A stretch of 64,000 bases of DNA from Bigelowiella natans CCMP2755 (taxonomy: Eukaryota; Protista; Cercozoa), in contig ADNK01000490.1 of the NCBI GenBank assembly GCA_000320545.1, positions 62,001-126,000 on the forward strand. The letters run 5' to 3'. Position 1 is the first letter of the stretch. Each line of letters starts with the position of its first letter. Under the pieces are notes generated by a model that saw nothing but the letters and a program-made list of their open reading frames with translations, ran no database searches and was not told where the DNA came from. A program made the translations under genes and the position numbers. Positions 134 to 64,000 of this stretch are shown one piece after another.

Positions 134-3100
134 GTGGCAGCAACATCAGTGAGTAAGATCGACGATGCGAAAAAATCCTCTCCACACACTAATATTCATA
201 CTAATATTCCTCCTCCTCTTAATACTACCACAACAAAAACTTCTACTTCCACCACCCCTACTACTACTGCTACAACTACCGCTACCACTACTAAGACTGC
301 TCCCCCAAACAAAGTCACCTCTTCTACGAATGAGAATGAGAAACGTCTCTCATCCCCGCCCTCAACATCAAACAACGAACGCCGTTATAGCCGCAGCGAT
401 CGAACATCATCCTCAAGGTTGCATGCACGTTCCTCCTCCACCTCGTCCTCTGACTCGGAGTCCTCTCGAAGTAGTAGAGGCAGCAGCAGGAGGAGGAGGA
501 GGAAAGGGGGGAGGGAAGGGAGCGAGGGGAGGAGTACCGAATGGCGCCGAGGTGATGATCGAAGAAGAGAGAAGGCGGCATTGCCCTCTTCCTCTTCCTC
601 CTCCTCTTTACAAACGTCAACAGCACAACGAGAGAGAGGAGAGAGGAAGCAGCCTAAGCAGCAAAAACGACCGCCTCCCTCTCCTTTGAATAATGGGCCG
701 CGCGAGAATGGAGGAGGAGGTGAGCGTGATGAAAACGAAGCTCCTACTACCGAAGAGAGGCAGCGCCTAAGGAATTGTCTTCTTCAGTGTTCTCAGACTG
801 GCAATGGGAAGAAAGCGCTTGCTGCTATCCGTAAATCGGTGGCCGATAGAAGAACCATTATAAAGGATGTTTCTCTGTACGATTTTGCACTGATTGCGCT
901 GGCGAAGAGTGGCGATGCCGACGGCGCCATAGAGGTCTTTCAACAGATGAAAATTGCAGGTGTTTCTCCCGGGGCTCAAAGCCACAACTATTACCTCAAC
1001 GCGCTGGATAAGGGGGGACGCAGTGCGGCGGCCATTGCACATTTTGAAGCTTTGCTGGAAAACCCTGCGAATAAGATCGATATCGACTCCGCTACTATTA
1101 ACATAGTGACAGGCATTTGTAGGCGACTGGGTGGTCGTCAATGGCAGGTGAGCCTCAAGGCCCTTCATGCGCTCGAAGTCAAGCATAAAGTCGGTCCCAA
1201 TTCCGACAGAGCTTACAACCACACCCTAGCTGCACTCAAAGAAGCAGGCGAAATACGCCCTCTCCTCATTCTCTTCGAGCGGATGAACCGGTTGAAGGCA
1301 CTACGGAAGACGAATGCAACGTACAACATCGTCGTGGAGGCTTGCAGCGAGGCTGCCGATTACTGGAAGCACGCAATGCTCACAGTGGAGAAGATGAAAT
1401 GCGACAGATTTGTTCCTGGTGCCTCGACATACGTTCACCTCATCTCCGCTCTATTTAAGGGAGATAAATTTGATCGAGGCCGTTGGTATCTGAGCCAAAT
1501 GGAGTCCCTTGGACTTTCCTCCGACAATAATGCCTTCAGCAAATTAGTGAGGGCTTGCGGAAAGCGCTCTGACGTCGCTATAAAGCTTTATCGGGAGCGA
1601 AAAGACGCGGGGGGGGGGAGGGGGAACGACATGCCGGTGTTCGAAGCTTTGTTGTGTTGCTGCTATGAGTCAGGCGACTGGCAGAAGGCTAAGGAGCTCT
1701 ACCGGGAGATGACCAGCACGCGCAACAACTTGCTTCCCACCACCGACGCATTCGAAAGCCTGTTCTCCGTGCTTGTCGCCTCCTCGCGGTTCCGCGATGC
1801 CATTACCATCTTCCAAGATGTCGAGTTGGAGTCCAAAAAGCGTACGCGACTCAGCCTTCGGGTGTATAACCTCATATTCCGCTGCTACATTGCGGCGGGA
1901 TGGCAAGCTGTGAAGGGGGAGACTGCCGTGAGAATATTCTTTCGCATGGCGAAGGAGAAGCACGTGAGGCCAGATTTTGGCACCTACGACGCTGTCCTGC
2001 GTATATGCAGAGCGTTCAGGTTACGCGACGAGGCCATCCGCGTCTTTGACCACCTCGATCATGACGTAGACGTTGCGTTGACGCCGGGACTCTTGCAAAT
2101 CGCTTTGGAAAGCCTAGCTCCGGGGAACCTGCTATTGAAACGGGGGGAAAAGGAACTCCCAGCGTGGAAAGTGGCCGTTGATATCGCTCGAGACGTGTCA
2201 AGGCGACCAGGGCTGCTGCTGCGTCGTACGACGGGTGTATTCAACGCCGTCCTCAGGGCGTGTGCCGACGCTGGGGAGCTGAGCACCTCAGCGAGTGTCT
2301 TTATGGAGATGCCTCGGGATAAGGCTCGGCCTGACCAGGACACATATCATGCGCTCATCTCATGTGCTGGATTGCGGGAAAAATGGAAATTGGCGCAGCA
2401 GCGTTTTCAGGAGATGGACCTGCTCAACCTGGCCAAGGGCCCTGTGACGTATCGGCTGCTTTTGGGAGCGTCGCTGCGGAGTCGTGAGTGGCTGCAGGTA
2501 TTCGAGGGATGGAATAGCATGTCGAGAGATAATGGAGCAGGAATCATCACAACACCACCAGGGGAAGGACCATCAATTAGTAGTAGTTGTAGGAGTCTCA
2601 TATTCTGTGGACTACTGGACGCCTGCGTGGCCTTGGGGTATTATAAGGAAGCGTTTACCATTTTCAATAGCGTGCTTTCCGTATGTAAGGAGACGGATAA
2701 GGCGACGGCGAAGAAGGTGCAGAAGCACCAGGAGCTGCAACAGCAGGATGATAAGACAACAAGCGGTAGAGTCGAGACGACCCACCACCAGCAGCAGCAG
2801 CAACAGCAGAGGCACAGCAACGTGATAATATCAAGGATGAAGTCCGTGCTACACTCACAACCATGGCCTCGCCGGAAGGTGGTGGAGTACGCCCTTGGAG
2901 CGGCCATGCACACGTGCACGCGACAGGCAATATACCAACCGTCTCTTGATCTGCTCCGGAAAACATGGAAGGAGGGCATCTGTGCGGAGGCAGAGAGAAA
3001 GGCGCATCAGCTAATTCGGCTTGCTGAAACAAAGGGGCCCAAAGAGGCCGTTACAGAAGCAGAGCGAATAACGAGCAAGTCGATGAAGAGAATCGTCATC

Positions 3101-3925
3101 TGTGCAGCCACCGCCTTTGTCCACACTCTGCCGAGGTACAGCAATAAAAACAGCAACAGTGGTGCTGGTGGTGGAGGGGGGGGGAAGCGAGCGCGCAACG
3201 CAACTGGTAGACAGCAGAAGCTGCTTCGGGAGTCGATAAATGTGCTCAGAGAAAAGCTCGATCAGTGGTGCGTCAATTCGACAGAACTGACAGCGAAGAT
3301 GCTCAACTTGTACACTGGCTCCGAAAAGCAGCACAACGACCAACTCCCTCGCCCCACAAATGATGATGATAATGATGATGATGGTAGTAGAGCTCCTGCT
3401 GCGAGCTGGTGGCAACTGAAGAAGAAAGCCACTGTGACGCCCACGAAAGCTATCACCACTAGTATGGAGACGAAGAAGAAGAAGAAGAAGAAGAAGAAGA
3501 AGAAGAAGGGATTCGAGTGCAAAGAAGAAGAAGAAGAAGAAGAAGAAGAAGAAGAAGCGAATTCCCCAAGTGGACACATGTGGACTCGCTCGGGTAGCAA
3601 GATCGTCTTAGTGGATGCTAAGCCATTCGGTATGTCGACGAAGGACAACATCGTATACTCTGTCAAAGCGGCGGCAAAGGAGGCCGGAGTGAGCATGGGA
3701 GACGAGATCGTAACCATTGCAGGAAATCCCGTGCAGGACAACGTAATCGCACACATGTTCTCGGCGCAAACGCTGCCCTTTGTCATAGAGCTTAAGCCGG
3801 GCCGTCATAGCACGAAGACTACACCGGCTGCTCGGAATGCGGGCAGCAGCGAGTTGACGACTAAGGAGCAACAAGAAGAAAAGGAAGCTATGACCGTGGT
3901 CGAGGCGGTGATGATGTCTCTGGGT

Positions 3926-3961
<36 letters not shown>

Positions 3962-6216
3962 CAACAACAACAACACAAAGCAGCGAGAAGAGGCGAATTG
4001 ACAGCGGAGGAAAGGCAAGAAAAGGACGTTGCAGCGGCGGTTCAGGCTGTGATAATGGCGACACCATCTGCTGCTACTACTAATAAAGCTACTACTGCTA
4101 CTGATACTACTACTGCTGATAGTGATGCTAACAACGGCCGCAACTCTACTACTGTCACTCAGAGTGGTGCTATCATCGGCATTCCTGGAACAACAAAAGT
4201 CGTAGCAGCTGCTGCCGCTGCTGGTGCTGGTGCTACTCCCTCTCCTGCCGCTACTAGTGGTAAGTCTGGTGTAAATCAACCATCCCAAGTCAGCCTACCC
4301 CCCCCTATTGCTGGACAAAAGAGGAGACGGAAGAGAAAGAGCAGATTCGATCAGGGAAAGCCAAACCAGCACCAGCACCAGCAGCATTCCAAATTCAAGG
4401 CGGCTACGCCAGCAGGGCCTTACAAATCACCAGTTGCGCCAGCGAGAGCAGGGACAGCAGTAGCAGCAGCAGCAGCAGGAGGAGGAGGAGGAGGAGGAGC
4501 AGCAGCAATACCTCCTCGAATAGCAGTCAGAGAGGAAAGCTTGAGAAATCATATTGCGGGGCCTGCTTTTCTTTCTCCTTCCCCGTTTTCCTCCTCATCT
4601 AAATCTATAGAGAAAGAGGGATTTATGCCGGTCAAGGCCCCGAAGATAGCAGCGCCAAGCGCAGCTCAGCCCCCACAGAAGAAGCCAGAAGAGAAGACGT
4701 CGAAGAATTATAACAAAAGTAGGAATTATAATGAAAAGCGTCTACAGCAGCAGCAGCAGCAGCAGCAGCAGCAAGAGCTGTCAATGAACAGTATGAAGGA
4801 GGCTCTAGGGAGGACACAGAGGGGGAAACATAGCGGAGGGAGGATAGATTCTATCAATTCTTCTCCTACCATCCGCCAAGCAAGCCGTAGAAATCGTCGG
4901 AGCCGCAGTCGTAGCCCCCCGACAAGACGCCAGGAATCAGCAGCAGCGTCACGGTCTTTGCCAGGTAATAAGAAAGGAGGATTGCAAACGACGAAAAGTG
5001 GACTGGGTGCGCGTAAAAGCAGTAGCAGCAACAACAACAATCGTCGCAGAAGCAATACAATAAGACCCCCCCCCCCCCACAAGCAGTCGGCGGCGAAGTT
5101 CATCTCGCACTCCCCCACGATCACGGCGTGGTAGTAGCCGCGGCAGCAGGGGCCAGAAAAGAGGCACAAGCAGGGGCTCATCGCCGACTAGTGGCGGCAA
5201 CAGAAACAACAAAAAGCGCCGTCGCAATATGTTCCGCGTTTCGCCATCTTCTTCACCAAAGACCACGAGGAGGGCGCAACGAGGAGGGGGCGACTCGTCA
5301 CGGTCTCCACCCAGTCGCGTTGTGAAGAGGGAGCAGGAGCTGAAGATGAAGAGAAACCGTGCACGGCAGCAACAGCAACTGGAGCAACAGCAGCATAAGC
5401 AGCATAAGCAGCAGCAGCAGCCACATCAAAGAGAGGTCGTCGCCGGCGTGAGTGGTGGGAATATACCTTATAATAATAATCGTCATCATCTTCGTCATAA
5501 TCATCGAAGTCATCACCATTACGATAATGATGGTGGACGTGGTGGTAATACTGCACGGCAAACTCGACGACGACGGCCTAATACGTCATCATCGCTGTTG
5601 CCTTCACCAACTTCCTCCCTGATCTCACAGTCCTCCCCTCCTTCCTATTCTCCTCATCGTCTTGGTTATCATCATCGAGGATCTAGTCAGTACCAGCACG
5701 ATGGTGATTCTGGTAATAATAACGACGAGCTGTCGTTTGACCGGGAATACGAAATCGCTCTACAAACAGAGAAGCGGCGGGAAGAGCGGCTGCTGCTCAG
5801 AGAAACACAGCAGCAGCGACAACAACAACAACACCACCTTCACCGCTTCGATGACGGCGTTGACTATAGGCAGCGAGGTCAGAGGAGGGGGGGATTCGCA
5901 TTGACATACGACGAGAAAATAGTTGTGGGAGAGGAAGAGAAGGAAAGTATCCGTCATCGTCGCGATCATCGTCGTCAAGTTAACCATGATCACTACCAGC
6001 AGCAGCAGCAGCAGCAACACGCGAAAGGAGGGTACGATGAAGAAGAAGATGAGGATGAGGATGAAGATGTGGATCTTATCGATGATCGTAAGGACGCACA
6101 AGAAGAAGAAGAAGATACACCGCCATAGAGGAATATTAGCAAGCACACGCTCCCCCCACGTTTTCTTTTTGTACAACGGCTTAATTTTCCATTTGTATTG
6201 CCATATACTATTTATA

Positions 6217-7741: not shown

Positions 7742-8031
7742 ATGTGTGTACTATAAATCCTGTTGAAGGAGTGCAGATTCCTTTGACCTGATATTATATT
7801 CTTAGGTTTACTGATGTCGTAGTAAGGTGTGGGGAGCTGATTCGGCACTGGCAGCCTTTCACAATGCACCTGCAAACGAAGACTGGCGGCCCCGACATAC
7901 TCCACAACAGTAGCAGCATCAGTATGTCCAATCGAAAGAACGGTGACGGTAGTGCCAGTAGATCATCAGCAATCATGAATCAGGAATCGTTTAGTCCACC
8001 TCGAGATCCACGCATTCGATCCAAAAAATAA
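134..8031 (+). CDS. Very large PPR-repeat protein with a PDZ-like domain, RS/low-complexity region, WW domain and C-terminal TFIIS-N (Med26/IWS1-like) domain; 5' end probably outside the window; frameshift at C13 (5066-5078)
   Basis: Tandem PPR-like helical repeats at ~860-2680 (e.g. TYNIVVEACSEA, TYHALISCAG). PDZ-like segment at ~3580-3795 (KPFGM...AGVSMGDEIVTIAG). After the frameshift the RS-rich frame runs to a donor at 6088. Exons 6366-6415 and 6601-6847 give DLPEGWRACKEKASGD-IYYWNVNDDRTTWDRP (WW). Exons 6998-7083, 7241-~7320 and 7806-8031 give ALKALKNLRSLDVDASLLAKTKVG...VVVRCGELIRHW (TFIIS-N-like). One small exon near 7430 is unresolved. Confidence 0.75.
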
Positions 8032-9074
8032 CTAGTTAACATATCAAAGCGATTATTGATCTCATTTGATCACTTAGCTTCCTATGTGTGCATATCTATG
8101 TATTACAGCGATGCACGGAAACTAAGCGCCTGTTGCCTTGTTTCGCATTGTTGACAGCGACAGCCCGTACGATACGTCGAAATGTCCACCCCACGACACA
8201 GCTCTAAGCGTCGTTTATTTCGACAATGGTCATGCAATGCTTCTGGAAAAAATACGTAGCGTAGCTGCATACATGTACCTACATCTAGATGTAGGCTAGA
8301 TAGGCTCTTCGATGCATGCATGCTAGCATGTTCGTTCGACACATTGTGCATATTATTATGCATCATCACACATTGCATCGTAAATGCTTAATTGATAAAT
8401 TACACCCGTCTTGCATTGTCTCGTACTAGCGTAGGGTGCAATCGCTCAAAATTCACGTATGTCTAGATGTGCATCATGGCAACTTAGCACTGTGCACCTC
8501 CTACTAAACACCCAGCTGGCTAGCTAGCAGCTAGCTAGATGCCTGTCTGTGGCACACATCGATCTAGACGAGTGAGACGGATGCAACGAAGTGATTAAAT
8601 CTAGATGTGCGTCGATGGAATCTGATCTATTTCTGCGACACATTGCAGCTTGTTACATTTCTAGATTTGGGCATTTTAGTTCATTGTATGTGTTAGAGGT
8701 AGTGTAATGTAGCTAGCAAGGAAGCTGTGGGTGCTTGTACTTACGAAGTACGTTGCTGTGGCATTCTCTTTACAGTGAGACCAGACACTTTCAGGTTCCC
8801 CTACTTCCCATTCGGCGAATATACTCTTATTATAGCTTGTACGTACATAAATGTCAAAGTTTTCGAGACTACCAAGGATGTTCCAATATTGCATATTGCT
8901 GTTACATGCATCATGAACAAAGCCGGAAATACGAGCACATGAGACTTAGATTTTAATAATTCGATAAATGAGTTATATACAATGGTTATAACACATACAC
9001 ACAACTATCAATATAGCCTAAGATGAACAATCGCTCTTCGTCTGACTTCCACAGCCCCGCTATACATAGTCCCA

Positions 9075-10418
9075 CTACAGGGCCGTCCCTCTCTCCAAGT
9101 TTTGCCTGATTTCCACCGTGTATGGATCGTAGGCACGCTTGACTTTCTTGTTGAAAACACGGTTCCTCTCATTGATATAGTCTATATCAGCTTCATTGTA
9201 ATGTGCACGACGCCTGCTGAATTTTCTCCTTCGTTCCTGGGTGGCTTCAAGCTCAGCAACCATATGATCGATCATGTGTTCTGGAGGTTTATCGCTTCCC
9301 CACTTGAGTGAACCTTCGCCACGGACTTCATCGCCATTATGCCGGCCCTTTGGAACTTGGGCCAATCGCTTCTTGTATCCCTTGTATAACGCGTCCTGAT
9401 TGAAGACATTCCAGCCAAAAGATGCTTTGTTCTTCTCCTTCTTCTTCCGGACTTTCTCACTCGCTTCGTGCCCAGCTGCTGTATCAGTAAGGAATTTGAA
9501 CTGGTCCGGGTCTAGGCCTGCTGCTTCTAATTCCTTCTTCTTCTTCTCGTATTCCTTCCAACGCTCCAGATTCTTCTTCTTTGCCTTCCCCTTTTCTCCG
9601 CCTGTTAGCCGCTGCTTCTCCTCAACAGCTTGCTTTCTGTTGTCCTTGCGGCCTGCATTCATTTTAAGCCGCAGCGCTTGGAGTTTCTTCTGCCTCTCCG
9701 AAAGAGGTTTACCTCCTCCCCCGACTGAAGAGAATCCTATTTCGTCCTTTTTTTCGGTCTTTGCTGCTTCTTCCTGTTTTTTCTCCTCCTCACCTTCATC
9801 TTCGTCTGAATCGTCGAGTCCCAAGTCAATCTCCTCGTCTATTGGAAGCTTCTTTTTTTTCTTAACTGAGGTTTCCGTATCAGAAGAAACTTCGCCACAT
9901 TCTGCAATTATGACATCTGTGAGTGGGCGGTCGCCGCTCGAAGTTGGTACTTCTTCAATCCTGCGCAACAGTTCCATTCCCTCGGTGAGCCGCCCAAAGA
10001 CTACATGCTTGTCGTTCAGATGGGGGGTGGAGCGGAACGTTATGAAAAATTGTGATCCGTTTGAGTTAGGTCCACAATTAGCCATCGAGAGCATTCCAGC
10101 ACCGAAATGCCTGTGCAGGAAGTTCTCATCATTGAACGTCCCGCCATAGATAGACTCTCCACCCGTTCCGTCAGATCTCGAGAAGTCTCCTCCTTGTGCC
10201 ATAAAGCCCTTTATAACACGATGGAAAATAGTTTGGCGAAACTGGAGTTTTTTCCTGGTGGTTGCCCCGTAGCCCTTTTCTCCCGTGCAGAGACAACGGA
10301 AGTTCTCGGCAGTTTTTGGGCATGAATCTTTGAAGAGCTCGAACACGAGCCGTCCGGCATCCTTAGAACCGATACGAATGTCAAAGTAGACTTTCGGGTT
10401 CGTTGAAGAGGTCGCCAT
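9075..10418 (-). CDS. Cyclophilin-type peptidyl-prolyl isomerase fused to a C-terminal SYF2 splicing-factor domain (single exon)
   Basis: Cyclophilin motifs [31 protein letters not shown] and NGSQFFIT. The C-terminus RRRKFSRRR...[15 protein letters not shown]...[12 protein letters not shown] is the SYF2 signature. Likely start is MATSS at 10418. Confidence 0.93.
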
Positions 10419-11092
10419 TCTCCCCTGGCGCGTGTGTCTGTGCGATAGCAGAAAGAGATGCAAAAATTAATTTTACTGGAGAGGATTTTCGAGAACCTGG
10501 AACAACGCCAACGTGGCTTTCGGAGTTACTTGCGGTCGAGACTCTTCGAAATTGCCGAGATACGCGCAATCTCGAAAGCCTCTTGCAAGCTTACTCTCCT
10601 TTCAAGAGGCAGTGTTAGGCTGAAAATGAAGAAATAGGAGGAGGAGCGCACCAGGCGAGGAAGGTGCCAACTGTGTTTCTGTACAGACCGCGTCAATCGG
10701 AATCCATTCCTGCATATATTGTAGTACGATTATGTCATGCGACATCGGTTCACTACCCTGGTTTGAGATAAATACGATCCGATTCCCATGTGCATTGGGG
10801 AAAAAGAAGCGCGTCTAGTTCTTTCAGGTGCCCATGCGCCACCCGATATTTTAAAAAAAAGGCACTAAAAAATATCGGGGAAAAGTTCTTTTCCTTGTCG
10901 CACAATCGCGTACAGAAAGAAACTCTGCAAATTCCTGCATCACGTTCCCCCCAAAGAGGTTTTGGGGGCTCCAGTTCTCAAACACTGGGGCCGGAATAGG
11001 CTGCGACGAACGGTTATCCTGTGAGTATTTAAGGTAAACTGTAACTGCATGCGAACGTTCGCAAAATCCTAATGCCTTATCTTGTAGGAGCA

Positions 11093-12659: not shown

Positions 12660-13370
12660 CACATTATCCAAATCATGCAATGTGTCAGTTCCTGAGTGGA
12701 CCATCCTAACGTGTAGCACATTTACCTTCGGTCGTATCTCAATGTCTAGATGTGGTGTTGGCATGAATGAGAACGAAAAAAATGGGTCTCTAGTAGCTCA
12801 TCAACAGAACAAAAATCGTTACGCACACAATTCACGGTATGAATATTTCCCGGACAGATGTCTTATCAAGACAGAAGTAGACAAATGATGTGAGGAGCAC
12901 CACTGACGTAGTATGTTGTAGTCTCTATAACACATAGCAATCTAGAGGACCGAGCTATGACATCTAGCATAGATATACGGCAAGCAATTAGATACGCTAT
13001 GTGAGACGGATCTAATGAAACGATTAAATTCTTTCAATGGTCATCCTAGTGTAGCTATGCAGAGCAGCGGCTACAGTGCTATATATGTACGTAATAACTG
13101 CACGATCTAGGCCATACTACGACGACAAGTCAACCACACGCGCAATTCTATACTAGCTATTCTCGCGAGTATGTAATATACGATTCGGCACGTTTGCATG
13201 TGGAAACTCTGCGGGGGACTGCTCATTTTGTGGCTAGATGTCTGCTAGCGCCGCTAGGCACATATTACGGGCTAGCGGGTGACGATGCAAGTTCTGACAA
13301 TGATATAACTTCCAATTGCGAGCATGAAGCGCACAAAGTGAACGGCGAGAGTCTAACAAATACAACATAA

Positions 13371-13516
13371 GCGCTGTGGCCGCCGGCTTTGCACAGCCAC
13401 GTACATCAAGATGACCATTGATGGAATGTTAGATGGACGTAATGAAGTGATCAAATGCATGTGTTCAATGGTCATCCTAATGCCTTGTAGCTGTGCAAAG
13501 CCGGCGGCTAAAGCGC
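13371..13516. repeat. Degenerate ~50-bp inverted repeat, member of a dispersed intergenic repeat family
   Basis: Arms 13371-13420 and 13466-13516 share GCCGCCGGCTTTGCACAGC and GATGACCATTG. Related copies lie at ~13007-13080, 13615-13657, 40182-40260 and 8578-8601. Confidence 0.8.
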
Positions 13517-13746
13517 TCATGTTGAATGCAGCATGCCTCAATTCATGTACATCCGTCTCACATGTTGTACGAACAAGCTAAGGCGGCGATCGAATAACAG
13601 CTGTCGTAGTAAGACGGATGTAATTAATCAATTAAATTTGTTCAATGGTCATCCTTATGATATGTGTAAAATTTGGTCTAAAATCTAGCTAAGGATTAGG
13701 GGCGGTCTAAATTTAACCGGTGCAGAAATATCCATCTATATGTAAT

Positions 13747-16397: not shown

Positions 16398-17150
16398 GCT
16401 TCTTCAATCTCAATGCTGATCTTGCTTTCTTTTCTTGCTTTCATTGGCATTGCTTGATTTCATTGTTCAATTTGAGAAGATTTTTTGCATGCTTTTTGCA
16501 GTGGATGTGTTTGTTGTGACACTTCTTGATCACGTGTTTGTTGCAAAAGCAACAATGTGTTTTGTCGTGTTCATTTGCATTGTCGCAGTGACAATCCCTT
16601 GATCGAATGGGCATCAACATGATCTCTGTTGTCCGTTCTGTGTTGAGCTACCCCCACCTACATCAGGAGCAGAAGGGACATTTTTTTGGGTCAAATCCAC
16701 ACGTCCACTGCGGCACAAACAAGCACACATGCGCATTCGACCACACGTGCTTGAAGCGTGCCCGTGATGTGCAGATGCGATGGATCGACTGCATTTGCGC
16801 ACATGGCACACGTCGATCTGGGTGCACATGGACGATTGTCACGTGCTCCACAGTTGTCTAGCTGTGCACAATTGAACAACAATGTCGTGTGACTTCGCAA
16901 CACAAATCTAGAAATGACCAGTCTAGCAGTGACGAATGGACATCACATCCGCGACAGCGCATGCTAGCATGTGCACATCATGCAGGCTGTGCCCAACTAG
17001 CCAACTGTAGCTCAGTCATCCGGCTAGCCGGCCGCACCTGCTGCACAGCCAAGCTAGCAAACACTGCACAAGCGAACAAATGCCAATGCGTGCATGCAGC
17101 ACTTTGATGTAATGACATGCTAGCATGCGCAACATCGGCATTCAACATGT
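16398..17150. other. TpA-depleted / CTAG-enriched intergenic tract
   Basis: No TA in 16398-16648. About 10 TAs up to 17100, all in CTA or TAG context (manual count). Confidence 0.9.
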
Positions 17151-17225
17151 CATTGCTCCCCATCCAAGCTTAGTTTCTACTTTCACCTACATGCCCTTTC
17201 ATTGCTACGTCCTAATCGCATCTTG

Positions 17226-33798: not shown

Positions 33799-33879
33799 AG
33801 CAAACAATCCTATTACCATAAACAATTGCTTTTCCTCCCGGTATGATAGACCGGTGTCCGTAGCTACTGCTTTCTCTCT

Positions 33880-35020
33880 CAGCTACCACATTCTAGCATT
33901 GTGCACGTCGCCATGACCATATAGGCACGCGGCATCATGTCGTTTGTAGCCATTCTTTTCTTGTGAATAACTTGCATCTAGTACGGCTCATGTATGCATG
34001 TGAAGTATTATCTACCACATGACATAGCTTGACGGTCAGATGTCATACCTACACCTCTAGAGCTATCATTTCCGCACATTCAAATGCCATTGATGTGCTG
34101 CACGTAGCACATCTACAAATGGGACATCAACCATCTGGACCATGCTAGCATGGACGCATGGACGCGCATTCACATCTCTAGATCTAGGTGTAGCTGCAGC
34201 GGCTAACAAATCTCTTTTTTGTTGCACGCGACACGTGCACCGCATGACGATCGATGCCGCGATTGTTCCATGTTGTTTGCGCGCGCAATTCCAGAATTGC
34301 TGATGTGGCAACATGTGCGTGGATGACCATCTAGCCATGCACGAACTAGATGAAGACGCTTTGGACGAGCACATCTGCTCAGACACGCCACCAGCTAGAC
34401 AGCTGTCCTCTCACGCTTGTCACGGTTGCCATGAGCCAGTCTAGCAGTGACCGGCCCTCTCTGGCCCTTGCTAGCTACGCTCACGCTGCGCACCAGCTAG
34501 CTAGCGGCTAGCCAGCTTGCAAGCTGGCTTGCTAGCTTGTTGTTAATTTCAGGCGAAGTTTTTCATTGGGTCAGCACTTGCGCAGACCATTCTGGCATTG
34601 CACAACGTGTTGATCGATGGAAGTGCAACAACACACAAACAAGCAGATCTGCTGTCCAATCAAAGCTAGCAAAGGTGCATGCATGCACAACGTTGCTGCA
34701 GTCTGGCAATGCCCACTTGGACCAACATTGGATCGTTCGATCCAAGTGAGATGCCACACCCAAAAATGTCTCAGAAGCGCAACTTCACATTGCAAACTTG
34801 TGAACAATGAACAATGACGAAAAACTACATCTCCGAAGTGTGACATGACAATTGCAGTGTGCGAAATGCAGTGCCTCGAACTGGCTTCAGTGAGGACTAA
34901 AACTGTGCCTCGAACTAACTTGTGACAAAGTGAATCACCTCACCATCTCGGCGAGTTGGATTTTGCCTGCGCACGAATGGACAACGACAAGGTCAGTTTC
35001 CAATTTCCATGGATTTCTGG
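33880..35020. other. CTAG-enriched then TpA-depleted intergenic tract
   Basis: Dense GCTAGC/TCTAGA up to ~34540. 34560-35020 has 4 TAs, all CTA (manual count). Confidence 0.9.
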
Positions 35021-38105: not shown

Positions 38106-38497
38106 GCCCCTACTTATCCTCTAGGTTGCACTTCCTTCGAGGTTGAATATAGGAGCTATGTCAAGGAAGGTTCCCCTATCCACGCTCGCATCCAAAGGAT
38201 GCAATTCAAAATTTCAAATGGCCACAATTTGCGTGGTTGTAGGTGCGGAGTGCAGACCATTTTACTCATGCGACAACGAATCATTTTACATATCCATTGG
38301 AATCCACGAGCGCTGACGCAAGGCTGAAAAACAGGTTATTTTTGACGTGATCCTGGGTGAGAATTATTTTGTGAAATACCGAACATTATGACTTGACGGC
38401 AAGCAGGTTTCGTTGTCGCAATTATGATGTAAAGAAAGAATATACAGATCCTAACCGAACATTCTCTCCTGCTTCCTCACAACCCAACAGAGTAGAT

Positions 38498-39834
38498 ATG
38501 AGCGATAAGACGACGGACAGCTTAGCGCAGCAACTGGCCAACGCCCGGGTCGGCCTAAAGCCTCGTAATACTGTGTTCACAGATGAAAGAGGCAACGTCC
38601 ACATGGAGAGGATTACAGGAGATCCGCTGGTTGACGAGCGCAAAACGGAAGAGAAGAAAGCGAGCCAGGAAAGGATGAAGGCTCCCTGGATTCATATGCA
38701 TGGCCGCCTGGGAGCGAAAAACTGGGCTGCCCCGATTATAACTAAGGTGTGTAACGAAGATGCTCGACCAGGCTACAACACGTGTAAAGCCCATGAATAT
38801 AACGAAGATCCAGAAACGTTCTCCGAAAAAATCAAGAAACTTGCAGAGATCATCCAAAAAAGCAAACGATGCATTGCTTATACGGGAGCTGGAATCTCTA
38901 CCGCATCCGGCATTGCTGACTATGCGTCAAGAGACTCTGGTCGACCTAAACTTATGTCTCCATTTGACGCACAACCAACTCTAGCCCACCGTGTTTTGGC
39001 AGCTCTCCATAAGGAGGGATTTCTCAAAAATTGGATACAACAAAACCACGATGGTTTGCCTCAAAAGGCAGGCTATCCCCAAAAGGATTTGAACGAGATC
39101 CATGGTTCGTGGTATGACCCGTCGAATCCAGTTGTCATGATGAGTGGCAACCTTCGTGAAGACCTTTTCTCCTGGCTTATCGAATGGGAAAAAAAATCAG
39201 ATTTATGCCTAACCCTCGGCACATCCCTCTGTGGAATGAATTCCGATCGAATGGCCTTAACTTGTTCGAAACAGAATCCTGAACTGGGAACAGTTATAAT
39301 AAGTTTACAGCAGACCCAACTGGATGAACATGCAAGCTTAAGATTTTTCAGTACCTGCGACAAGGTGATGGGCGCTCTCGCCAAAGAAATGAATCTCAAA
39401 CTACCCGAAGAAAAGGTTTATATTCCCAATATCCCAAAAGATACAATTGTAGAACAGGATGTATTTCTTGTGGGCTACGATGCAAAGACTGGCAAAAAGA
39501 ATGGAGACGAAAGATTTAAGCTGGATTTGAGAGTAGACTCGAAAGTTGTGATCCCTGTTGGACAATACAAGGGAGTTCAGGGCACAGTGCAAGGAAAAAA
39601 TCGGGAAGGCCATTACAAGATTTGCTTCTATCATCGATTGAAAAAGGGCTCAAAAATCAAGCGCCCACAGGTCAGGTTTCTATGCAAAATTTTTGTCGAG
39701 TAAATCAATGTGACAAAGCGTTAATTCTAGTATAAACTCAGGTTCGGGTACTCGGAAGATGGTGGATTGAGGCGGCAACGAATGGCACTATTGATCAGTT
39801 GCCATTGATTCCATTGACAATAAGCGCAGACTGA
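38498..39834 (+). CDS. Sir2/sirtuin family NAD-dependent deacylase (class IV-like) lacking the zinc-binding module, with a C-terminal KOW-like motif
   Basis: Motifs YTGAGISTASGIADY, PTLAHRVL, QQNHDGL, EIHGS and LGTSL. Intron 39670-39741, final exon VRVLGRWWIEAA...SAD*. Confidence 0.88.
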
Positions 39835-40959
39835 TTAGCGCTGCTAACATCCATCCCGGCATAAGATTTATTAATGAACGTAATCTTAGTACATATATCT
39901 GCCTTGCTCGAGGTTTGCAAACTCAGACGTCTTATCACTTGCGGGAGCTTTCATAACATTCTGTGCAAAAACTTTGAAATCGATCCGATCGAGCAGATGC
40001 TACATCGTGTCGCCGCGAAAACTCAAATTATGTGATAGATGTATACGATGGCTGCTTTGCAGCCATGCTAGCATGGCTCGTGCTGGTGCGTTCTTGCCTA
40101 GCTTGCACTGTTTTGACCGAATTGTCATCCTAAGCGTTAATGAAAGCGTGTGTGTGTGCACATGCTAGCATGTGAAATGCAGATGTAACAAATGTACAAA
40201 TTGCATGGAATCAACAGTCATCCCAATGTCTAGATGTAGCTGTGCAAAGCGGCGGCTGCAGAAGTCGGTGGCCATTAGTGCTCAGCTGACATGTTCCATG
40301 CTAGCATGTTTTGCCGAATGTAATGCCATTGTTGTTGTTGTTTCGCCCGGCGCGTGACACACATACATGTATGCATGCGATGCATGCTAGCATGCTAGCA
40401 TGCTATGGTCATGGCGCTTACTAGCTTAGCTAGCTAGTTACGATAAGTGGTCGAAATCTTAAACGTCGTCGCGCACATGGATGGATGCCTTTATTCTAAC
40501 GGATGTTTGATGTGCATTCGATGATCCAGTATGCGTACATACAGTGAGCGAGTGACATAGCAGGTCGGAGCGTAGGGGCAATACATCTAAATGTCTGAAG
40601 CTAAGCAAGTAGCGAGCGTAACATATCTAGACATGGTGCAGTTTGGAAAATCTAGGTTTCGAGGGCGAAACAGAATGATGATATGTACGTTCTGATTGCG
40701 ATACTACCGAGAAAACAGTATAAACAATTAGGATACATCATACTATTTGATGTCTTACTGTACGCACTTCAGATTCTAAAAGCATTAAGTCCAATACCTG
40801 GCGATTCTAATAGTTTCACTGTTCAAGCGTTTTAGTGGCAGCGTCTTAACTTCTCCATCCCACTAAATTAGTTAGCAATTTGTCGTTGATGATTGTTTTT
40901 TACTTCACGAATCATAAACGACGGCGTGTCGAAAATAAATTTCGAGGAGAAAATTGGGG

Positions 40960-42021
40960 TTAAACCTTATATTTGTGAAGGTTTTCAGTCGTCCAGTAGC
41001 CAGAAACCTTACTATTTGGAACGGAAGAACCTTTTTAAAGTTTTAGGTTAACTAACATCGTGCTGTAACTCATCTATCCAGAACTTATCAAGTTACCCAT
41101 TCCCACGGAACATGTTGGATTCTCACATGAGCCTGGGTTGAAGCAAAATGGACACACATGTTCCTCCATGCATCCTGGTTAAGCAATAAAACCATCTTTA
41201 TTTACAAAAAGTTTCGAATTGCTAATTCCCCCCTCTATGAGCAGCTGAGAGCAACAGGTCTTACTACCACATTTCATCATTCCTCCTGCACAGCCCTCGC
41301 ATAAACTCCCGAGACAGTCGGGGCAGAAATTCCATAACATGATGGAGGAATCCACGAATACTAAGACATATATCATTGAATGGGTAATCACAGGCAGATA
41401 TAGAAATATTGGTGTGTGCTTCTACATCTTGTTGGGGGTATCTCGTCCTGGCCTCGCTCCTGCAATTCCTCATTTGTGCAGTCGAAGCACAAGCTACTTT
41501 CGCATCTATAGCACACAACTTTCATCATGGAATTGTCAGTCAGGTGATGGGCTCTACATTCCATAGCCTACCGAGTATGGCATGCAATGCAGTCGACAGA
41601 GATGAACTCCTAATGCACACATAGGAACGAATGAGTTCGGGCAGATCAGGCGACACAACTTCGAGCAAATTCACCTCATACTCATCCACACGACTGCATT
41701 TATCACAAACGCCACCGGCTACGTAATCCAAGATCAGAGTCACTAAGCCTGAACATATCGTCATCGTTGGCGAGCAGGTACGTGAAGGAACAATGTACAA
41801 TGTGGAGCACCTTGATGAGCCACGTTATGACCTAGCGCATCTTGAATCGTCAACACAAGTTTTTTATGCACTACAGGTTCGAGGCTCATGATGACGATGA
41901 GCAAGTTTGGACCTATTCCTTCCCCTCTTCCACTTGTCACGACTCGCACGTACGTACTTCGGTTGCTTGCAGGAGAAGAACCTGTGCTCTCTTTGGACAA
42001 AACACAGTTGAATTTTGACAT
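40960..42021 (-). CDS. Small cysteine-rich (multiple CxxC) putative zinc-binding protein with short introns
   Basis: In-phase exons give LVTLILDYVAGGVCDKC, CIACHTRCESSLCFDC, FCPDCLGSLCEGC and KCGCMEEHVCPFCFNPGSCENPTC. The 5' exon is uncertain. Confidence 0.55.
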
Positions 42022-42053
42022 GCGACACGACCTCAGCTGCTGCAATTTTTATA

Positions 42054-43260
42054 GAATTTTTGCCTGTGTGACGTGATGGGTGAGCACACTCATGATCCTT
42101 CAAGATCCCCTCATTGGAATCACTTCATTCATTCATTCTTTCATTCAACCTGAATCGTTCGGCTGGCGGATGCGAAATTTGGTTGGTTGGCTTGTTCATT
42201 GCAAAGGAGGTGGAGCACGTTGAGCACCGAAAGAAAAAGAAGAAGAAAGAAAGAAAGAAACTTTGTAGTTCAACTGCGTTTCCAAAGTTTTGCATGAAAA
42301 AGAGTGAAACATTGAAACATCGAAACCTTGAAACGTTGATTGCAATGCGACACTCAACACGATGCACAGACAGCACGCTGCACTCCAGCACTCCCAGCGC
42401 GATGAAAGCACCTCGAACAATGGGTGAACGAGTGAATTGTGAACGAACGACTTCACGCGTGTTTCCAGTGATCAATCGCACGCCACTGGCACCAACATTG
42501 ATCGTCGCATCGCATCGTGCGTCACGGCTGCGCGCCGTCCACCATGCGCGTCTTGTCATTGTGCTTTGCTTGCATGGCTGGTTGGCATCGATTGCATCAA
42601 TGTGGTCCTGCGCCAGCTAGATCGACTCTGTCGACTCGTGGCCACGACTGCAGACACGATGTGCACAGTGCACACATCGCATGTGATCATTGTGTACATG
42701 CAGTGTGGCACACATCTACTAGTCTAGTAGCTAGCTACGTGCAGTGCAACTGTGCAACACACATTGCTAATTGCCATATTGCGCACGTGAGATCGACCGA
42801 TGTGATGTGATCAATGCAAGCTTTGCAATTTGATCAATGGTCATAGATGGTCATGTCATCTTGATTGACTGATGACGTACAGTTGAACAGTGCACAATGT
42901 GCACCTTGTCGATCCATTGTCACGCAGCATGCTAGCATGTATCGCATCATTGTGAGATGTGCAACCAGCTTGATAATCTTGGCTAGTGGAGCTGCAGCCA
43001 CGTGCTCGCTCACGCAGGTGAACTAGCTTGCAATGTATGTGCTCCCAGCGAATTGACGTATGAACACGAAGCATGAGCGAGGTGTATAACAGTGCATGCA
43101 TGATGGGTCAACACTGCGGGTCGTGGCATAGCAGGGGACTTGCATTGTACTGCACTGGCCGTTGTACATTCACAGGTAATGTTACGTGTCGCGCGTGTGG
43201 CATGTGCAAAGTCATGGCATTCATGCATGATCTTCGTTTGTTAAGCTAAGGATGAACTAA
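42054..43260. other. TpA-depleted then CTAG-enriched intergenic tract
   Basis: One TA (GTAG) in 42054-42617 with abundant CG, followed by CTAG/GCATGC-rich sequence. Confidence 0.92.
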
Positions 43261-43593
43261 CATAAAGAAATCATCTAGTAGCACAATAAGCATTAGGATA
43301 CATTGTGTGAGATATTAATCAATTGCAACTCGGCGTAGATCGTTGAGAGGTTTTTACTACAAAAAAACCGTCACGCCATATCTGCCGGCTATCGGTCATA
43401 AGCTAAGTGCACCAATCGACAACACTTAATTATTGAGCGAAGGGAAGTGAAAGATTGTTTCTGCTTCTTACTGGTGATAATCTATGACGATTTTCACTTG
43501 TGGTGAAATATCGAATGTCACAAAAGATTGAGATTTTGCAACGTAAATTAAGATTAAATAAAAAGCTGCAGCAAATAGAGCTAGCTTGGTGGA

Positions 43594-44211
43594 CTACCGT
43601 CTCTCGAAGTCGTACTCTCTTGATTTCTTATTTTGACTATAGTTATGCGGCGACGTTGATTCTAAATGACTCCACGACTCACTCTCGTTTTCTATGCTGG
43701 ATCGAGACTTTCGTCGTATCAAAAACTTATAGAATTTTGGTATTGGTAATTCAGATGACGCCCCCTCATCTTGAGGGGCTTCGTTTCTCTCACTTTCCGC
43801 TATGTTGACATTGAGAGTTTCTTCTCGTGATGGTACGGAACCCTTAGGAGATGATACTTTTCGATAGTGTTGATATTCCCTCAGTGTCTGGGACTTTTTC
43901 TGTAGTTGTCGCTGGAGCTTATGAATTTCAGTTGCGAGCTTGTTCTCCCGCAATACTTGCCGTCTAAAAAAATAGGGAAATGTGTTGTTTTAGCTAATCT
44001 GTTTTAACAGCTGTCTATACAAAAAACATTTGTTTTCCAAGATGAACACGTTAAAATTAATGTGATACCGAACATGGGCTTCTAATTTTAGTTTTTTGTC
44101 TGAGTCTCTATCCGCCGGAAGAGTTGGCCGTTGCCATATGGTGAGGGCACAGCACGTCACGATAAGACCCACCACGAATAGAATTGCTGCGACAACACGA
44201 GAATTGAGCAT
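43594..44211 (-). CDS. Small signal-anchored coiled-coil protein of unknown function
   Basis: MLNSRVVAAILFVVGLIVTCCALTIW (transmembrane-like), one intron, then RENKLATEIHKLQRQLQKK. Confidence 0.5.
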
Positions 44212-45358
44212 CGCTATCAAGAATCTATGACATTGGTTGGATAAGCTCGTACCAGTCAGCAGGTGCATGGCCATGCCTTGATGTCGAAGCCAGCTCACTA
44301 TCCCAAAGGAGGATAGAGTACCTAGGATTCGGCACCGACTGACTGCCCCTCTTTCTCAAACAATGCCTCGTTCTCTCTTTCGGTGCTGCTCCTAAGTACT
44401 CCTAAACAGCTCACGGGGGGGAATCCATGGAGGACGACATAGACTCTACGATTGGCGGCGTTATTAGCAGTTACAACTCGTAGTTTACAATGTCAGTGAC
44501 GGACAACAATAAATAACAGACCATTTCTTGCATTAATTTACTGTTTTTTAGTACCTGTGGATCCACGTGATTGTTGTCAGTGCAAATAGATCTAGATCTA
44601 GTTAAAAATACATCGTAGTTTCCCCCCTGAAATCTTTTAAAAATCACTCTTCAGAAATCATATCTAATGGATGATATCCGGATTACCAGAAATATTTCTT
44701 CACAAAAAATAAGGTATTTTCCGGAAGAACATCTGGCCAAATAATACATGTACATTTAGTCTACGCTCATACCTGGACTACGAGCTCATTAAAATTTGAA
44801 CCTTCTCGGCAATAACCTGGGTTTGGGTTCCGAACTTGTGGGATAAAATGAAGCGAACAGCGAACTGCCAACTGGTCCCAATTTTTCCCATGTTTCTACA
44901 ACAAGGTCTGCAGATCTACGAGCTTAGAGAAGATGAATTGTAACTACTTATTCCGTCCATTCAAAAAAGTTGCATCCTCGCTTATTGCATAGAAATAAGA
45001 TGAAAATTTTATGTGCGACAAAGGAATAGAGCTTAATTTGTTAGGAAACCCAGAGAAACCACAGACGAACAGTCAAACGGAATGGCGTCGATCACGTAGG
45101 AGGTTGGCCTAGAGTCGGTTTACATCGATGTTGGGGATGGTTTTTTGAGTGTGGGAATCTAATAGTTAAGATAGAATTTCTGCTCTCCTATTCATACGCC
45201 ATGAAGAAGGGGAGGATTGGATATCTTTTGTTGCAGCCGTAGTGGAGTCACGTGCTCATTCATAGTTTTCCAATTACTTATTTGGACCACAGACGCGTCT
45301 TGGGCTGACGCGTTGATTCCTGGCATAGAGATAACTGGCTTACGGAAGGAAGATTTCA

Positions 45359-51972: not shown

Positions 51973-57079
<5,107 letters not shown>

Positions 57080-57359: not shown

Positions 57360-58650
57360 AATCGAAACAATTCCAGATTTTCGTTCTGCGACACTGGATT
57401 GATTCCTCCTTCTCTCACCTCCTCGTTGCCGACGTGTGTTTGACGGAATCACTTCTTGCTGCGTCCTCGCAGCCATGCGCGTCAATTTTGCCCATGCTGG
57501 TTTTCACACCAGAGAGTCCTCATTGTTTTCAGCTCGAGGCACTACATTTCGCACTTTGCTAGTGTCATGCAATGGTTGGAAATGTGGTCGATCAACAAAG
57601 TTTCTTTCTTTCACGATCGACAGAGCTTCCACATCGACCTTTTGTCAAGTCCCCACGTCCGGTCTACGTTGAGTGCATGGCTGCTCCGCTTTCCCAGCTG
57701 CTTGAGGCGCGACCACTTTGTCAGAAGTGCGTTTGTGCACGTCTTGTTGGAGTGTCGAAGTGAACACGAATTGACGACCTTGAACCTTTCAGCCTTGGAT
57801 CTTGACTTTGACACTTTGGCACGTTGCACCGCGCTGGGCCATTTGGAATCACTTCACTCATTCATTGATTTACCTGTTCATGGTTGCCGCTTCTTCTCCT
57901 TCTTCTTCTTCTTCTTCTTCTTCTTCTTCTTCTGCTTCTTCATCATCTTCTTGATTGCAAAGCGCAAGGTGGAACTTGGTGCACTACTTTTTGTGGTTCT
58001 GTGAACGCAACAAACTGCAACATTCGAACCACTTGATTCGCGCACTCATCAATGGGATTCATCAGTCTCCAATCATTTGTTGTGTGAGTGATCGAATGGG
58101 TGATTTCCAACAGGATGCAGCACACACACATGCACAGTGCAGGCGAGCAGCAGGGGAATCATCAAACCCCAACGGGCTAGCGGGTGTGAGATGTGAGACC
58201 AAGTTGCCTGGGAGGGGACCGTTCACGTCTGAGTCGCCACAGCAACATCTAGAACATAACCATGCACAGGCAGGAAACAAACTTGCGGCACTCCATCTCT
58301 CTTGTCAATGCTTTTGAACATGCACGCACGATCTGGATCATGCTAGCATGCATGGCTGGCTCGGATGAGTCGTATTTTGATCGAATGAGCATCGCAAGAT
58401 GCGAGCCCGTGCTAGTTTCAGTAGATCACAACATGCGATGTAGCTAGGAAAAACTATGCCTAGATGTAAACATCACTTTGGATTGATGAGACTAACTTTC
58501 TTCTGTAACCATGCAAAAAATACATGAAAAACATCAATGACAATGGTTTATGCCGCGTGTCTAGTTCGACTCTTGCTGCAGCATGCTACCCCATGAAGTG
58601 GATGCTCGAATGCGAGTTGCTCGAAACCTAGTTTGTCCATGAAATTGGTC
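57360..58650. other. TpA-depleted then CTAG-enriched intergenic tract
   Basis: About 8 TAs in 57360-58340, 6 of them CTA/CTAG (manual count). Confidence 0.9.
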
Positions 58651-58700
58651 TTTGGTGTCAGTGTCATAGATGATTAACTATTAGCACAAGTAGCGAGCTG

Positions 58701-61632: not shown

Positions 61633-62904
61633 ATGAGAGGGGGTAAATTCACAATGGTAGCACTCAATCAAAACTTTTTCACCGATTTATGTAACCTTTT
61701 ACGCAGAAACGAAGAGCAGAAAAGGGAAATGCTTGCGCAATTTAGTGAGATGAGCTCGCATTACAATAGAAGGCATCACTCAACCTATGTCCGCCAGGAT
61801 TCTGTTTTTCCATTGCAACTTTCTGCGCCATATCTTGCTCCTCGAATGCGAATGCCTATAGTTTATCCACTGCGTCACATACCCTATTTTGGTATGCATA
61901 CACTTGGAGAAGTACACGTTGATCATCCAGCTCTCCCCCCTCAAAATTTTTATTTCATTTCCCCACATCAACAATCATACGTTTCGATACCACCAGTTCT
62001 CCTTAAAACTCACCCAAATCCTGCGACTTGGTCGCAAGAAAGAAGCCTACCCCAAGATTTTCAGATTAAGCATGCTCCAAATCATTACTGCTCCTCAAGC
62101 AGTCACGAAATTTATCCGCCACCCCATATCCCCCACTCTATCCATGCTCGTGTCGCCCACACCCCAGCCACGGCCCCACCCACCTCTTACCTTCCCACCT
62201 CTTCAGTATCAAGGCAATATTCGGAAGGAAGAGAGAAACAGGCCTCAATGGCAAATTCTGGCAGTAGTAATGGCGGCCATAGCCAATATTCTCATCTGTC
62301 GTTACCAGATGGCGAAGGGAATGTTGTCGGTCCGAAAAATTTCGCTGTGAAGACTATTCCCCCTGTTACTATGCCTTCGCAAACAGTCAAGAATTTACCG
62401 AACGTACTGCTTGGAATGTGTGACAGATTCACCGAAAAAAAGGGGGGTTACGCCGACGTAGCGGAGGATTCACAGGGTGGACTTTTCATCGTAAATCATC
62501 ATTCGAAGGAAGTGCAATCAATCCGTCCACAAGCAGAAGAAACTCCATCATCTTCCGGTCGTAGTGCAAACAGCTTTGGAGTGCCTGATCAAATTCGAAC
62601 AGTTCAAATTTTCAATAAGCATTCCGGTAAAATGCACAATGAACCTTCCTAATAATCTGGCATCCATTGTTACTGACAAGCGATCACTCGCATATGTTCT
62701 GTGAAAGGTCGTTACAACTTGCGGTATGTTTGTTCGGTATGTGGATCTATGAAAGCTGGCAAATGTCACATTCTGTCGCATCTGCGATCTCACACAGGAG
62801 AGCAACCATTCAAATGCACGATTTGCAGTCGAAGGTTTGCGCACAAATCGAATTGTGTTAGGCACCTCTTGCATATGCATGGTGTGAAAATCCCATCATG
62901 TTAG
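61633..62904 (+). CDS. C2H2 zinc-finger transcription factor (two C-terminal fingers)
   Basis: Exon 61633-62626, 54-bp intron (GTAAAA...TACTGACAAG), exon 62681-62904 encoding YVCSVC...HLRSH-TGEQPF-KCTIC...HLLHMH. Confidence 0.85.
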
Positions 62905-63099
62905 ACAAGTAGCAGAGCTTGTCTGGACTAAATGAAATTGATAGACTTGACAAAGAAGTGTGAAAATTCATTTTAGAAAATCTCTGGTTTACAAAATAAT
63001 GATAGAATTTAGACATGACGATGAAAACTTAAACATTGTTTCTTTTCTTGATCCTTCGTCGCACCTAAACACCAAGGTCTTAAAACCTTAACTTACACC

Positions 63100-63910
63100 A
63101 ACTTTGAACATGTGGAAAGAAGCTAAATGTGCTTGCCATCATTTCTTCATGAAAACTATCGTGTGGTCTACAACGATGCAATTGCACATCGTGTGGTGCG
63201 ATCAAAGATTGAAAAATCATGTGGAATCTTTGCAGTGAAAAAATGCAGAAAAATAGATGATGCTGCTATGCCACTTTGACTGACATGATGTTTGAGTTCG
63301 ATGATCATGGCTAGATGGGCATCTCAATGTGCGGGCTTAGGAACAACTATCTAACTAGACAACCGTCTGTGCGTTGTCTCTGCTAGTCCTGCTAGCCTGT
63401 GCGTTCTAGCGTTGCCCACATTTAACAGCGCCGCGCTAGCTAGCGCGCATGGCATGCATGTGCAACTAGCTAGGTTGTAGTAGGGCCAAAAACTAAACTA
63501 AGTTTTGCTCACAACCATCTCCATGCGCCATCTGCTGTAGCTAGTAGCTAACTAGCTAATGCATGTCCACTGCTAAATCCATGCTGCACGTCTAGCTGTC
63601 TAGCTGTGTTAGCCATGCTATGCTAGCATGCTAGCATGTCCGTGGCAACTAGTCTAGCTAGCTAGTAGTGTTCAGCTAGCTAGTTCCACATCTAAGCATG
63701 CACACAACAAAGCTAGAAAGTGACGCAAATTGACAACATGCGTGCTTCTGCAGGTCGGCATTAGTAGCTTTGTACGAGAACGCCATGCACAGCACGTGCA
63801 GCAGTGTTTCTTAATCTAGTAATCTTAGCAAGTACCATGTAAATTGCAACATGAATCACGGACACAATCATGTCTTGTCTATACCTAGATCTTTTCTAGA
63901 TTCAACGCAA
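63100..63910. other. TpA-restricted / CTAG-rich tract downstream of the zinc-finger gene
   Basis: Residual TAs in 63100-63340 are CTA or TAG. Runs such as GCTAGCTAGC and CTAGTCTAGCTAGCTAG follow. Confidence 0.85.
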
Positions 63911-64000
63911 CGGAGATGAAGGGACACAGCACATATGAATACACACACACCAATGATGGGAATAACCAACAAGTCATTGTCAAAAACAACTAACTACTAA

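Follow-up and report, generated by a model that had tools for sequence, protein, structure and literature searches.

A TpA-erased spacer between host genes of Bigelowiella natans as a probable further footprint of its TpA hypermutator

Within a window of 64,000 nucleotides from Bigelowiella natans CCMP2755 (contig ADNK01000490.1, positions 62,001 to 126,000, numbered here from 1), a segment of 564 bases at 42054–42617 has lost nearly all of its TA dinucleotides, and it is very probably a footprint, old and close to saturation, that the TpA hypermutator of this species has left on a small nest of short retroposon-like repeat ends in a host spacer. This mutator was described by Mettrop et al., who found by mutation accumulation that two virus-derived regions, a 186-kb giant-virus insert and a 25-kb virophage region, mutate about 1000-fold faster, and that the changes in both are almost only TpA to TpG or CpA, on both strands; TpA-poor, CpA/TpG-rich windows were reported genome-wide, with clusters counted if at least 3 kb long, and an ADAT2-like deaminase was proposed as the enzyme (bioRxiv 10.64898/2026.01.13.699255). 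The process, which can be regarded as an A:T to G:C counterpart of RIP, is therefore already on record. The mechanism class is thus known, and the focal tract is one further footprint of it. The two share the species and assembly, the direction of change on both strands, the regional character and the retention of CG, whereas the published targets are large viral inserts and the tract described here measures 0.6 kb, consists of short repeat ends in a host spacer and overlaps a 5′ UTR. A sequence-only reading of the window had proposed a regional, context-specific T:A to C:G process at TpA, which was right, but which had already been published for B. natans. What we add to the known process is modest, and consists of a four-base context rule and of a clock provided by insertion scars.

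The focal tract occupies a tandem spacer with minus-strand host genes on either side, and its features are as follows.

40500–42116, minus strand: gene B, a spliced host gene with Cys-rich exons and 7 introns in an RNA contig
42054–42617, no strand: TA-erased core of the focal tract, non-coding, from base counts and the RNA layout
42075–42146, plus strand: R1, a short dispersed repeat end with a (TTCA)n tail, in the gene B 5′ UTR region, with about 9 homologues elsewhere
42229–42297, minus strand: R2, the short end of a dispersed repeat, tailed by (TTTC)n and akin to the SINE-like family found in tracts 2 and 4
42306–42390, minus strand: R3, the short end of a dispersed repeat, tailed by a simple repeat
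42381–42392, no strand: 8-bp insertion scar with a converted centre, CACT-CCAG-CACT, the only clear scar in the core
42618–43232, no strand: partly erased CTAG-rich flank (observed/expected ratio of non-CTAG TA 0.53), in which the scars centred at 42719 and 42932 are intact
43232–44443, minus strand: gene C, a spliced host gene whose 3′ end borders the CTAG-rich flank, from RNA contigs

By dinucleotide counting the core contains one TA where 37.2 are expected, the observed/expected ratio of TA in the whole window being 0.75, and the core ratios are 1.08 for CG, 1.63 for TG and 1.47 for CA; the first estimate of one TA against roughly 30–40, with plentiful CG, is therefore borne out. The surviving TA, at 42266, stands in GTAG within R2, and most other R2 copies are without it. 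The longest span in the window with no more than one TA is 566 bases, as compared with a maximum of 285 (mean 186) among 200 simulated first-order Markov sequences modelled on the window. The tracts lie far outside the range of ordinary composition, which leaves the sequence-only reading standing on this point. Conversion of TA to TG or CA in silico brings the GC content and dinucleotide profile of unerased spacers towards those of the erased cores (rms distance to the cores 0.12 vs 0.32). The CpG depletion expected of 5mC decay is absent, as seen both from the CG ratio of the tract and from the stability of CG sites among repeat copies.

A similar loss had been noted at four more places in the window, and it is clear at the first three of these and weak at the last. 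These tracts, together with a control zone, are as follows.

16398–17200, no strand: tract 1, a TA-erased core (to 16850) and a scar-rich flank
33860–35020, no strand: tract 2, a scar-rich flank, then a TA-erased core with a SINE-like copy (34799–34921, minus strand)
39960–40500, no strand: control zone with TA not erased, holding a CTAG-scar cluster and a LINE 3′ fragment (40180–40261), between convergent 3′ ends
57360–58700, no strand: tract 4, a TA-erased core and a scar-rich flank, with an R2/SINE-like piece at 57514–57612 and an R1 piece at 57842–57870
63100–64000, no strand: tract 5, a weakly TA-poor segment and a very scar-rich flank, behind the end of a C2H2 zinc-finger gene as read from the sequence

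The observed and expected TA counts in tracts 1, 2, 4 and 5 are 2/31, 4/32, 8/62 and, more weakly, 7/21 (63100–63340), and an objective scan recovered the first four tracts of the window, the focal one included, and missed 63100–63340. Every tract is polar, with a TA-free core adjoining a flank rich in CTAG, CATG and GCTAGC. Context counts bear out that the surviving TAs are mostly CTA or TAG. The pile-up of CTAG near the tracts is likewise real, but there are CTAG-rich zones with no TA loss at 8.0–9.0, 12.7–13.7 and 40.0–40.5 kb. As for the claim that CTAG is spared, nothing of this can be seen in the focal 564 bases, which contain no CTAG (the nearest is at 42617–42620) and whose one clear scar has been converted to CCAG; elsewhere CTAG is indeed lost more slowly. 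Tract 4 lies upstream of a minus-strand pyridine nucleotide-disulphide oxidoreductase ORF, in the same tandem layout as the focal tract, and an exon of this gene is at 56540–57061. Other genes of the window include a PPR/TPR-repeat open frame of 1666 codons (134–5134), a Sir2-family gene with one intron (38393–39877) and poly(A) near 39957, the end of the C2H2 zinc-finger gene (61633–62905), and a cyclophilin-SYF2 fusion (9075–10463), the nearest relatives of which are chlorarachniophyte, in agreement with a B. natans host.

The three repeat ends R1, R2 and R3 together make up about 40% of the focal core, and the remaining part is equally TA-free. Homologies of the tract extend over only 50–85 bases, which speaks against one long repeat family or a virus as its source; a search of the tract gave no viral signal and no Pfam match. 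The SINE-like repeat is about 200 bases long with more than 100 copies, and is found in tracts 2 and 4. At all loci fetched (by similarity, from the 91.4-Mb assembly of 3736 contigs), the sites homologous to R1–R3 and to the SINE-like repeat are TA-poor. In the repeat alignments a single site may read TA, TG or CA according to the copy, and the CG sites are kept (18/20, 33/34 and 30/34), although copies share ancestry and these counts are not of independent events. The sequence-only reading is not refuted by this comparison of repeat copies, and the repeat alignments and scar centres alike give a polarity of TA to TG or CA on both strands.

An extremely unlikely alternative is that the TA poverty was inherited, the tract having been assembled from repeats with already TA-free masters and little mutated in place. 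Two repeat families do lend themselves to this idea. In the SINE-like repeat, numerous YR positions are fixed for TG or CA across all copies, and in a young LINE family (APE and RT, 1164 aa) the final 780 bp of the ORF are TA-poor, with an observed/expected ratio of 0.13 against 0.68 upstream, the TA-poor part being sharply bounded (L074 1219–2000) and a 35-base probe from it being TA-free in 20 of the 20 copies found. However, the part of the core beyond the recognisable repeats is TA-free too, TG and CA alternate at single sites between copies, and the scars described below are unique to each locus and converted only in erased zones, so that inheritance is largely refuted as a sole cause. 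Moreover, comparison with unerased fragments indicates that the LINE end itself was derived by TA to TG or CA change (50 vs 8 polarised differences), and the mutator would still be required. Inheritance can therefore account for some TA poverty, although the source element had then already been exposed to the mutator.

Repeats alone do not appear sufficient to trigger erasure in the manner of RIP. The erased tracts do hold repeats, but LINE 3′ fragments at 13.0–13.7 kb keep their TAs, and no mutation is seen in a young Ty3/gypsy copy that adjoins an erased tract and whose two LTRs are identical, with 21 TAs each. Either the erasure of spacers is old or episodic, or it depends on a chromatin state still lacking in young inserts. 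The LINE-derived segment of the window at 12999–13661 comprises at least four decayed 3′ fragments in both orientations, which form an imperfect inverted repeat with TA not erased.

The context rule comes from the de novo mutations themselves. Positions were taken from Table S2 of the preprint and their context was read in 159 kb of the giant-virus region, with per-line counts that agree with the preprint table; scaffold_10 positions were carried to contig C3187 of the assembly (G000) by a single offset, with 44 of 45 falling on TA, which shows the assembly to be the one used in the preprint. Among 195 TpA events none is in CTAG, where 6.8 are expected from its 374 adenines, or 7.2 with local rates (P ~0.001), and the upper 95% bound on the relative rate of CTAG is 0.44. 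Three aspects of this pattern can be distinguished. First, a G 3′ of the mutated A lowers the rate to a ratio of 0.44 (P = 7e-6), with ratios of 0.14 for GTAG, 0.56 for TTAG and 0 for CTAG. Secondly, a 5′ C that is not accompanied by a 3′ G (CTAH) has a ratio of 0.79, which is not significant, and that for CTAT is 1.79; protection thus comes mainly from the G 3′ of the mutated A. Thirdly, since TAG is disfavoured on the strand of the A, a CTA/TAG duplex is protected once and CTAG twice. The suggestion made from sequence that CTA/TAG would be guarded on one strand and CTAG on both was therefore essentially right, with TAG as the protected reading and with the protection being partial. The de novo events have no bias with respect to viral ORF strand (71:64). 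Neither CTAG nor four-base context is mentioned in the main text of the preprint or in the text of its supplement (bioRxiv 10.64898/2026.01.13.699255).

In 46 kb of TA-poor host DNA the retention of the ten duplex NTAN classes follows the inverse of their de novo ranking (rho -0.93, P = 1e-4), the loci having been fetched by similarity to the tracts rather than at random and the background including microsatellites. This correspondence ties the short host tracts to the process measured in the virus-derived DNA.

Four giant-virus T to C events in Table S2 of the preprint fall on ApT rather than TpA (scaffold_10 402688, 416158, 431449 and 450385), whereas the text of the preprint places all events on TpA (bioRxiv 10.64898/2026.01.13.699255). 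Repeat copies likewise vary from AT to GT or AC, and ApT may be hit as a lesser target, at roughly 1% of the per-site rate for TpA. We also note that mutation pairs within a line in the giant-virus region, in bins chosen post hoc, comprise 11 opposite-strand and no same-strand pairs at distances of 16–150 bp (expected 5.5 and 4.0), and three same-strand and no opposite-strand pairs at 15 bp or less.

Sparing cannot enrich a word, and the excess of CTAG thus needs a second process, for which there is evidence in the form of 8-bp insertions. These scars, first indicated by insertions in repeat copies, have the form NNNN-CTAG-NNNN, in which CTAG stands between the two copies of a duplicated 4-mer. 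Exact direct repeats of 4 bp flank 43 of the 207 CTAGs in the window (21%) and 157 of 576 in other host loci, as compared with about 1% for other 4-mers and 1 of 187 in the viral region; the duplication is of length 4 only, with 3, 5 and 6 giving little or nothing. Scars cluster at 8000–9000, 12660–13700, 39960–40500 and 63341–64000 of the window, CATG being the commonest duplicated 4-mer, and clusters occur also where TA is not lost, for example between the convergent 3′ ends at 40.0–40.5 kb. The scar resembles a cut-and-paste transposon footprint, having a duplication of fixed length around a constant core. In Tc1/mariner-type excision footprints the target duplication flanks two bases from each element end, and NNNN-CT+AG-NNNN would follow the same logic, with the difference that the duplication is a variable 4 bp and not TA. 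A literature search for CTAG scars returned no matching paper.

The scars also record the action of the mutator. Scar centres that are now CCAG or CTGG make up 63 of 127 in erased zones and 2 of 66 in normal zones (P = 2e-12), and the duplicated 4-mers contain TA in 0 of 64 and 14 of 64 cases, respectively. Conversion has thus reached half of the scars in erased tracts, and the protection of CTAG is partial: CTAG is eroded slowly and is not immune, and its scars are usable as an internal clock for erasure. The original explanation of the CTAG pile-up by protection is correct to the extent that a partial protection is real, but the excess itself is supplied by the 8-bp scars.

Two other accounts of CTAG survival bear on these data. 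One, very unlikely in our view, is that CTAG persists merely as a consequence of scars that postdate erasure, with no real protection. Exact scars do account for 21–27% of CTAGs and are concentrated in the flanks, but the viral region is nearly scar-free and nonetheless has no CTAG events where about 7 are expected, so that protection there is not an effect of age; in addition, CTAG sites of the SINE-like repeat that are not scars are kept in 40 of 62 copies, as against 22 of 101 for its other variable TA sites. The other, somewhat less improbable but still unlikely, is that the CTAG palindrome is shielded beyond flank preference by a specific mark or binder, such as restriction-modification-type methylation. 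CTAG is alone among the classes in combining zero de novo events with full retention in old tracts, as such a shield would predict. A multiplicative model of 5′ and 3′ flanks fitted without CTAG, however, already predicts no more than 2.4 CTAG events (P of zero 0.09), which makes a palindrome-specific shield unnecessary, and the conversion of half of the scars in erased tracts is contrary to it.

In the explanation that we prefer, the mutator turns TA into TG or CA on both strands and leaves CG intact, at a rate that in the de novo data depends on context, with a 3′ G, especially in S-TAG, disfavoured. An independent process inserts the 8-bp scars in spacers near gene 3′ ends and supplies the CTAG excess, and the mutator wears these CTAGs down more slowly than other TAs. 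The targets would be silenced, repeat-derived patches rather than viral DNA as such. Activity on short host spacers is read from footprints, since outside its two hot regions the preprint has only a small number of TpA events, most of them close to viral ORFs (bioRxiv 10.64898/2026.01.13.699255).

Fungal RIP is a C to T process (CpA to TpA) that creates TA and acts in the sexual cycle. The B. natans process is like it in being regional, strand-symmetric, dinucleotide-specific and associated with repeats or foreign DNA, but it runs from T:A to C:G, destroys TA, and is seen in clonal lines. C to T change creating TpA is not what is found here, and the sequence-only reading was correct that a loss of TA with CG kept is the opposite of the RIP signature. 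Both ADAR and TadA/ADAT2-3 share with it the A to G outcome and the preference for a 5′ T or U. ADAR prefers a 3′ G (UAG), whereas here an A followed by a 3′ G mutates least, and the four-base rate table, with the order TAT > TAA > TAC > TAG and rates near zero for CTAG and GTAG, thereby constrains the enzyme, speaks against an ADAR-like reading, and provides a fingerprint for candidate enzymes. The 5′ T requirement and the pure A to G outcome fit a TadA/ADAT-type deaminase, and A to I deamination of DNA by a candidate enzyme of this type has, if the preferred explanation holds, a slightly better than even chance of being the chemistry; the other candidates are a modified T or A that mispairs and a polymerase that is error-prone. 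Profile searches for deaminase families found six dCMP_cyt_deam_1 loci and one A_deamin locus, and these families do not discriminate between the possibilities; for Tet_JBP there was one weak, stop-containing match below the cut-off, in a search whose sensitivity is limited by introns.

A more far-reaching and doubtful proposal is that the mutator is a chromatin- or small-RNA-guided DNA editor, rather than a virus-specific defence, which has swept many sub-kilobase repeat nests in ordinary host spacers, as far as the 5′ UTRs of genes that are expressed, and that the enzyme belongs to a class other than ADAT2, such as a DNA adenine deaminase of a new kind or one that acts by modifying thymine. 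The context rule behind such a non-ADAT2 reading would combine a required 5′ T, avoidance of 3′ G, minor ApT activity and opposite-strand pairs within about 150 bp.

The position of the tract relative to gene B is also informative. RNA contigs carry the gene B transcript to 42116 at least and probably to about 42280, and its ATG is likely near 42021, such that the core overlaps the 5′ UTR and the upstream region and the erasure ends about 30 bases short of the coding region. The tract would thus show the mutator reaching short non-viral repeat nests that touch host 5′ UTRs. It is highly improbable that the tracts are instead functional promoter or boundary elements selected against TA. The cores of the focal tract and tract 4 do lie just upstream of, or overlap, a gene 5′ end, and the erasure does halt ahead of the gene B ATG, but each tract is a mosaic of repeat ends unrelated to the others, the spectrum of surviving TAs matches the measured mutation spectrum, and a sharp edge at the coding region is expected from purifying selection on the gene.

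An exon-by-exon search with gene B gave no identified function. The tract yields two overlapping ORFs that contain no Tyr, in line with the nearly Tyr-free ORFs first described there. A Pfam search with the ORFs of the tract gave no match and RNA reads are nearly absent outside the 5′ UTR part; a coding function was rejected, and these ORFs are by-products without a family match. One DNA run has no difference at the focal locus, a comparison with no power as one TA is left. Two metagenome scans yielded no usable orthologue of the spacer in other strains, and the metatranscriptome contigs leave the tract uncovered; a sample of Amorphochlora amoebiformis (L075, 32 kb) is TA-rich, with an observed/expected ratio of 1.63, and has no TA-erased tract.

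Lastly, the de novo 'insertion' listed in the preprint at scaffold_8:334281 corresponds to the final 12 bases of a Ty3/gypsy LTR. LTRs of this type are at L073 241–531 and 5631–5921, in a family whose numerous copies appear nearly identical (about 100 matches of equal RT score). Many other indels listed in the preprint terminate in ACA, and these may be new retrotransposon insertions that were called as small indels.
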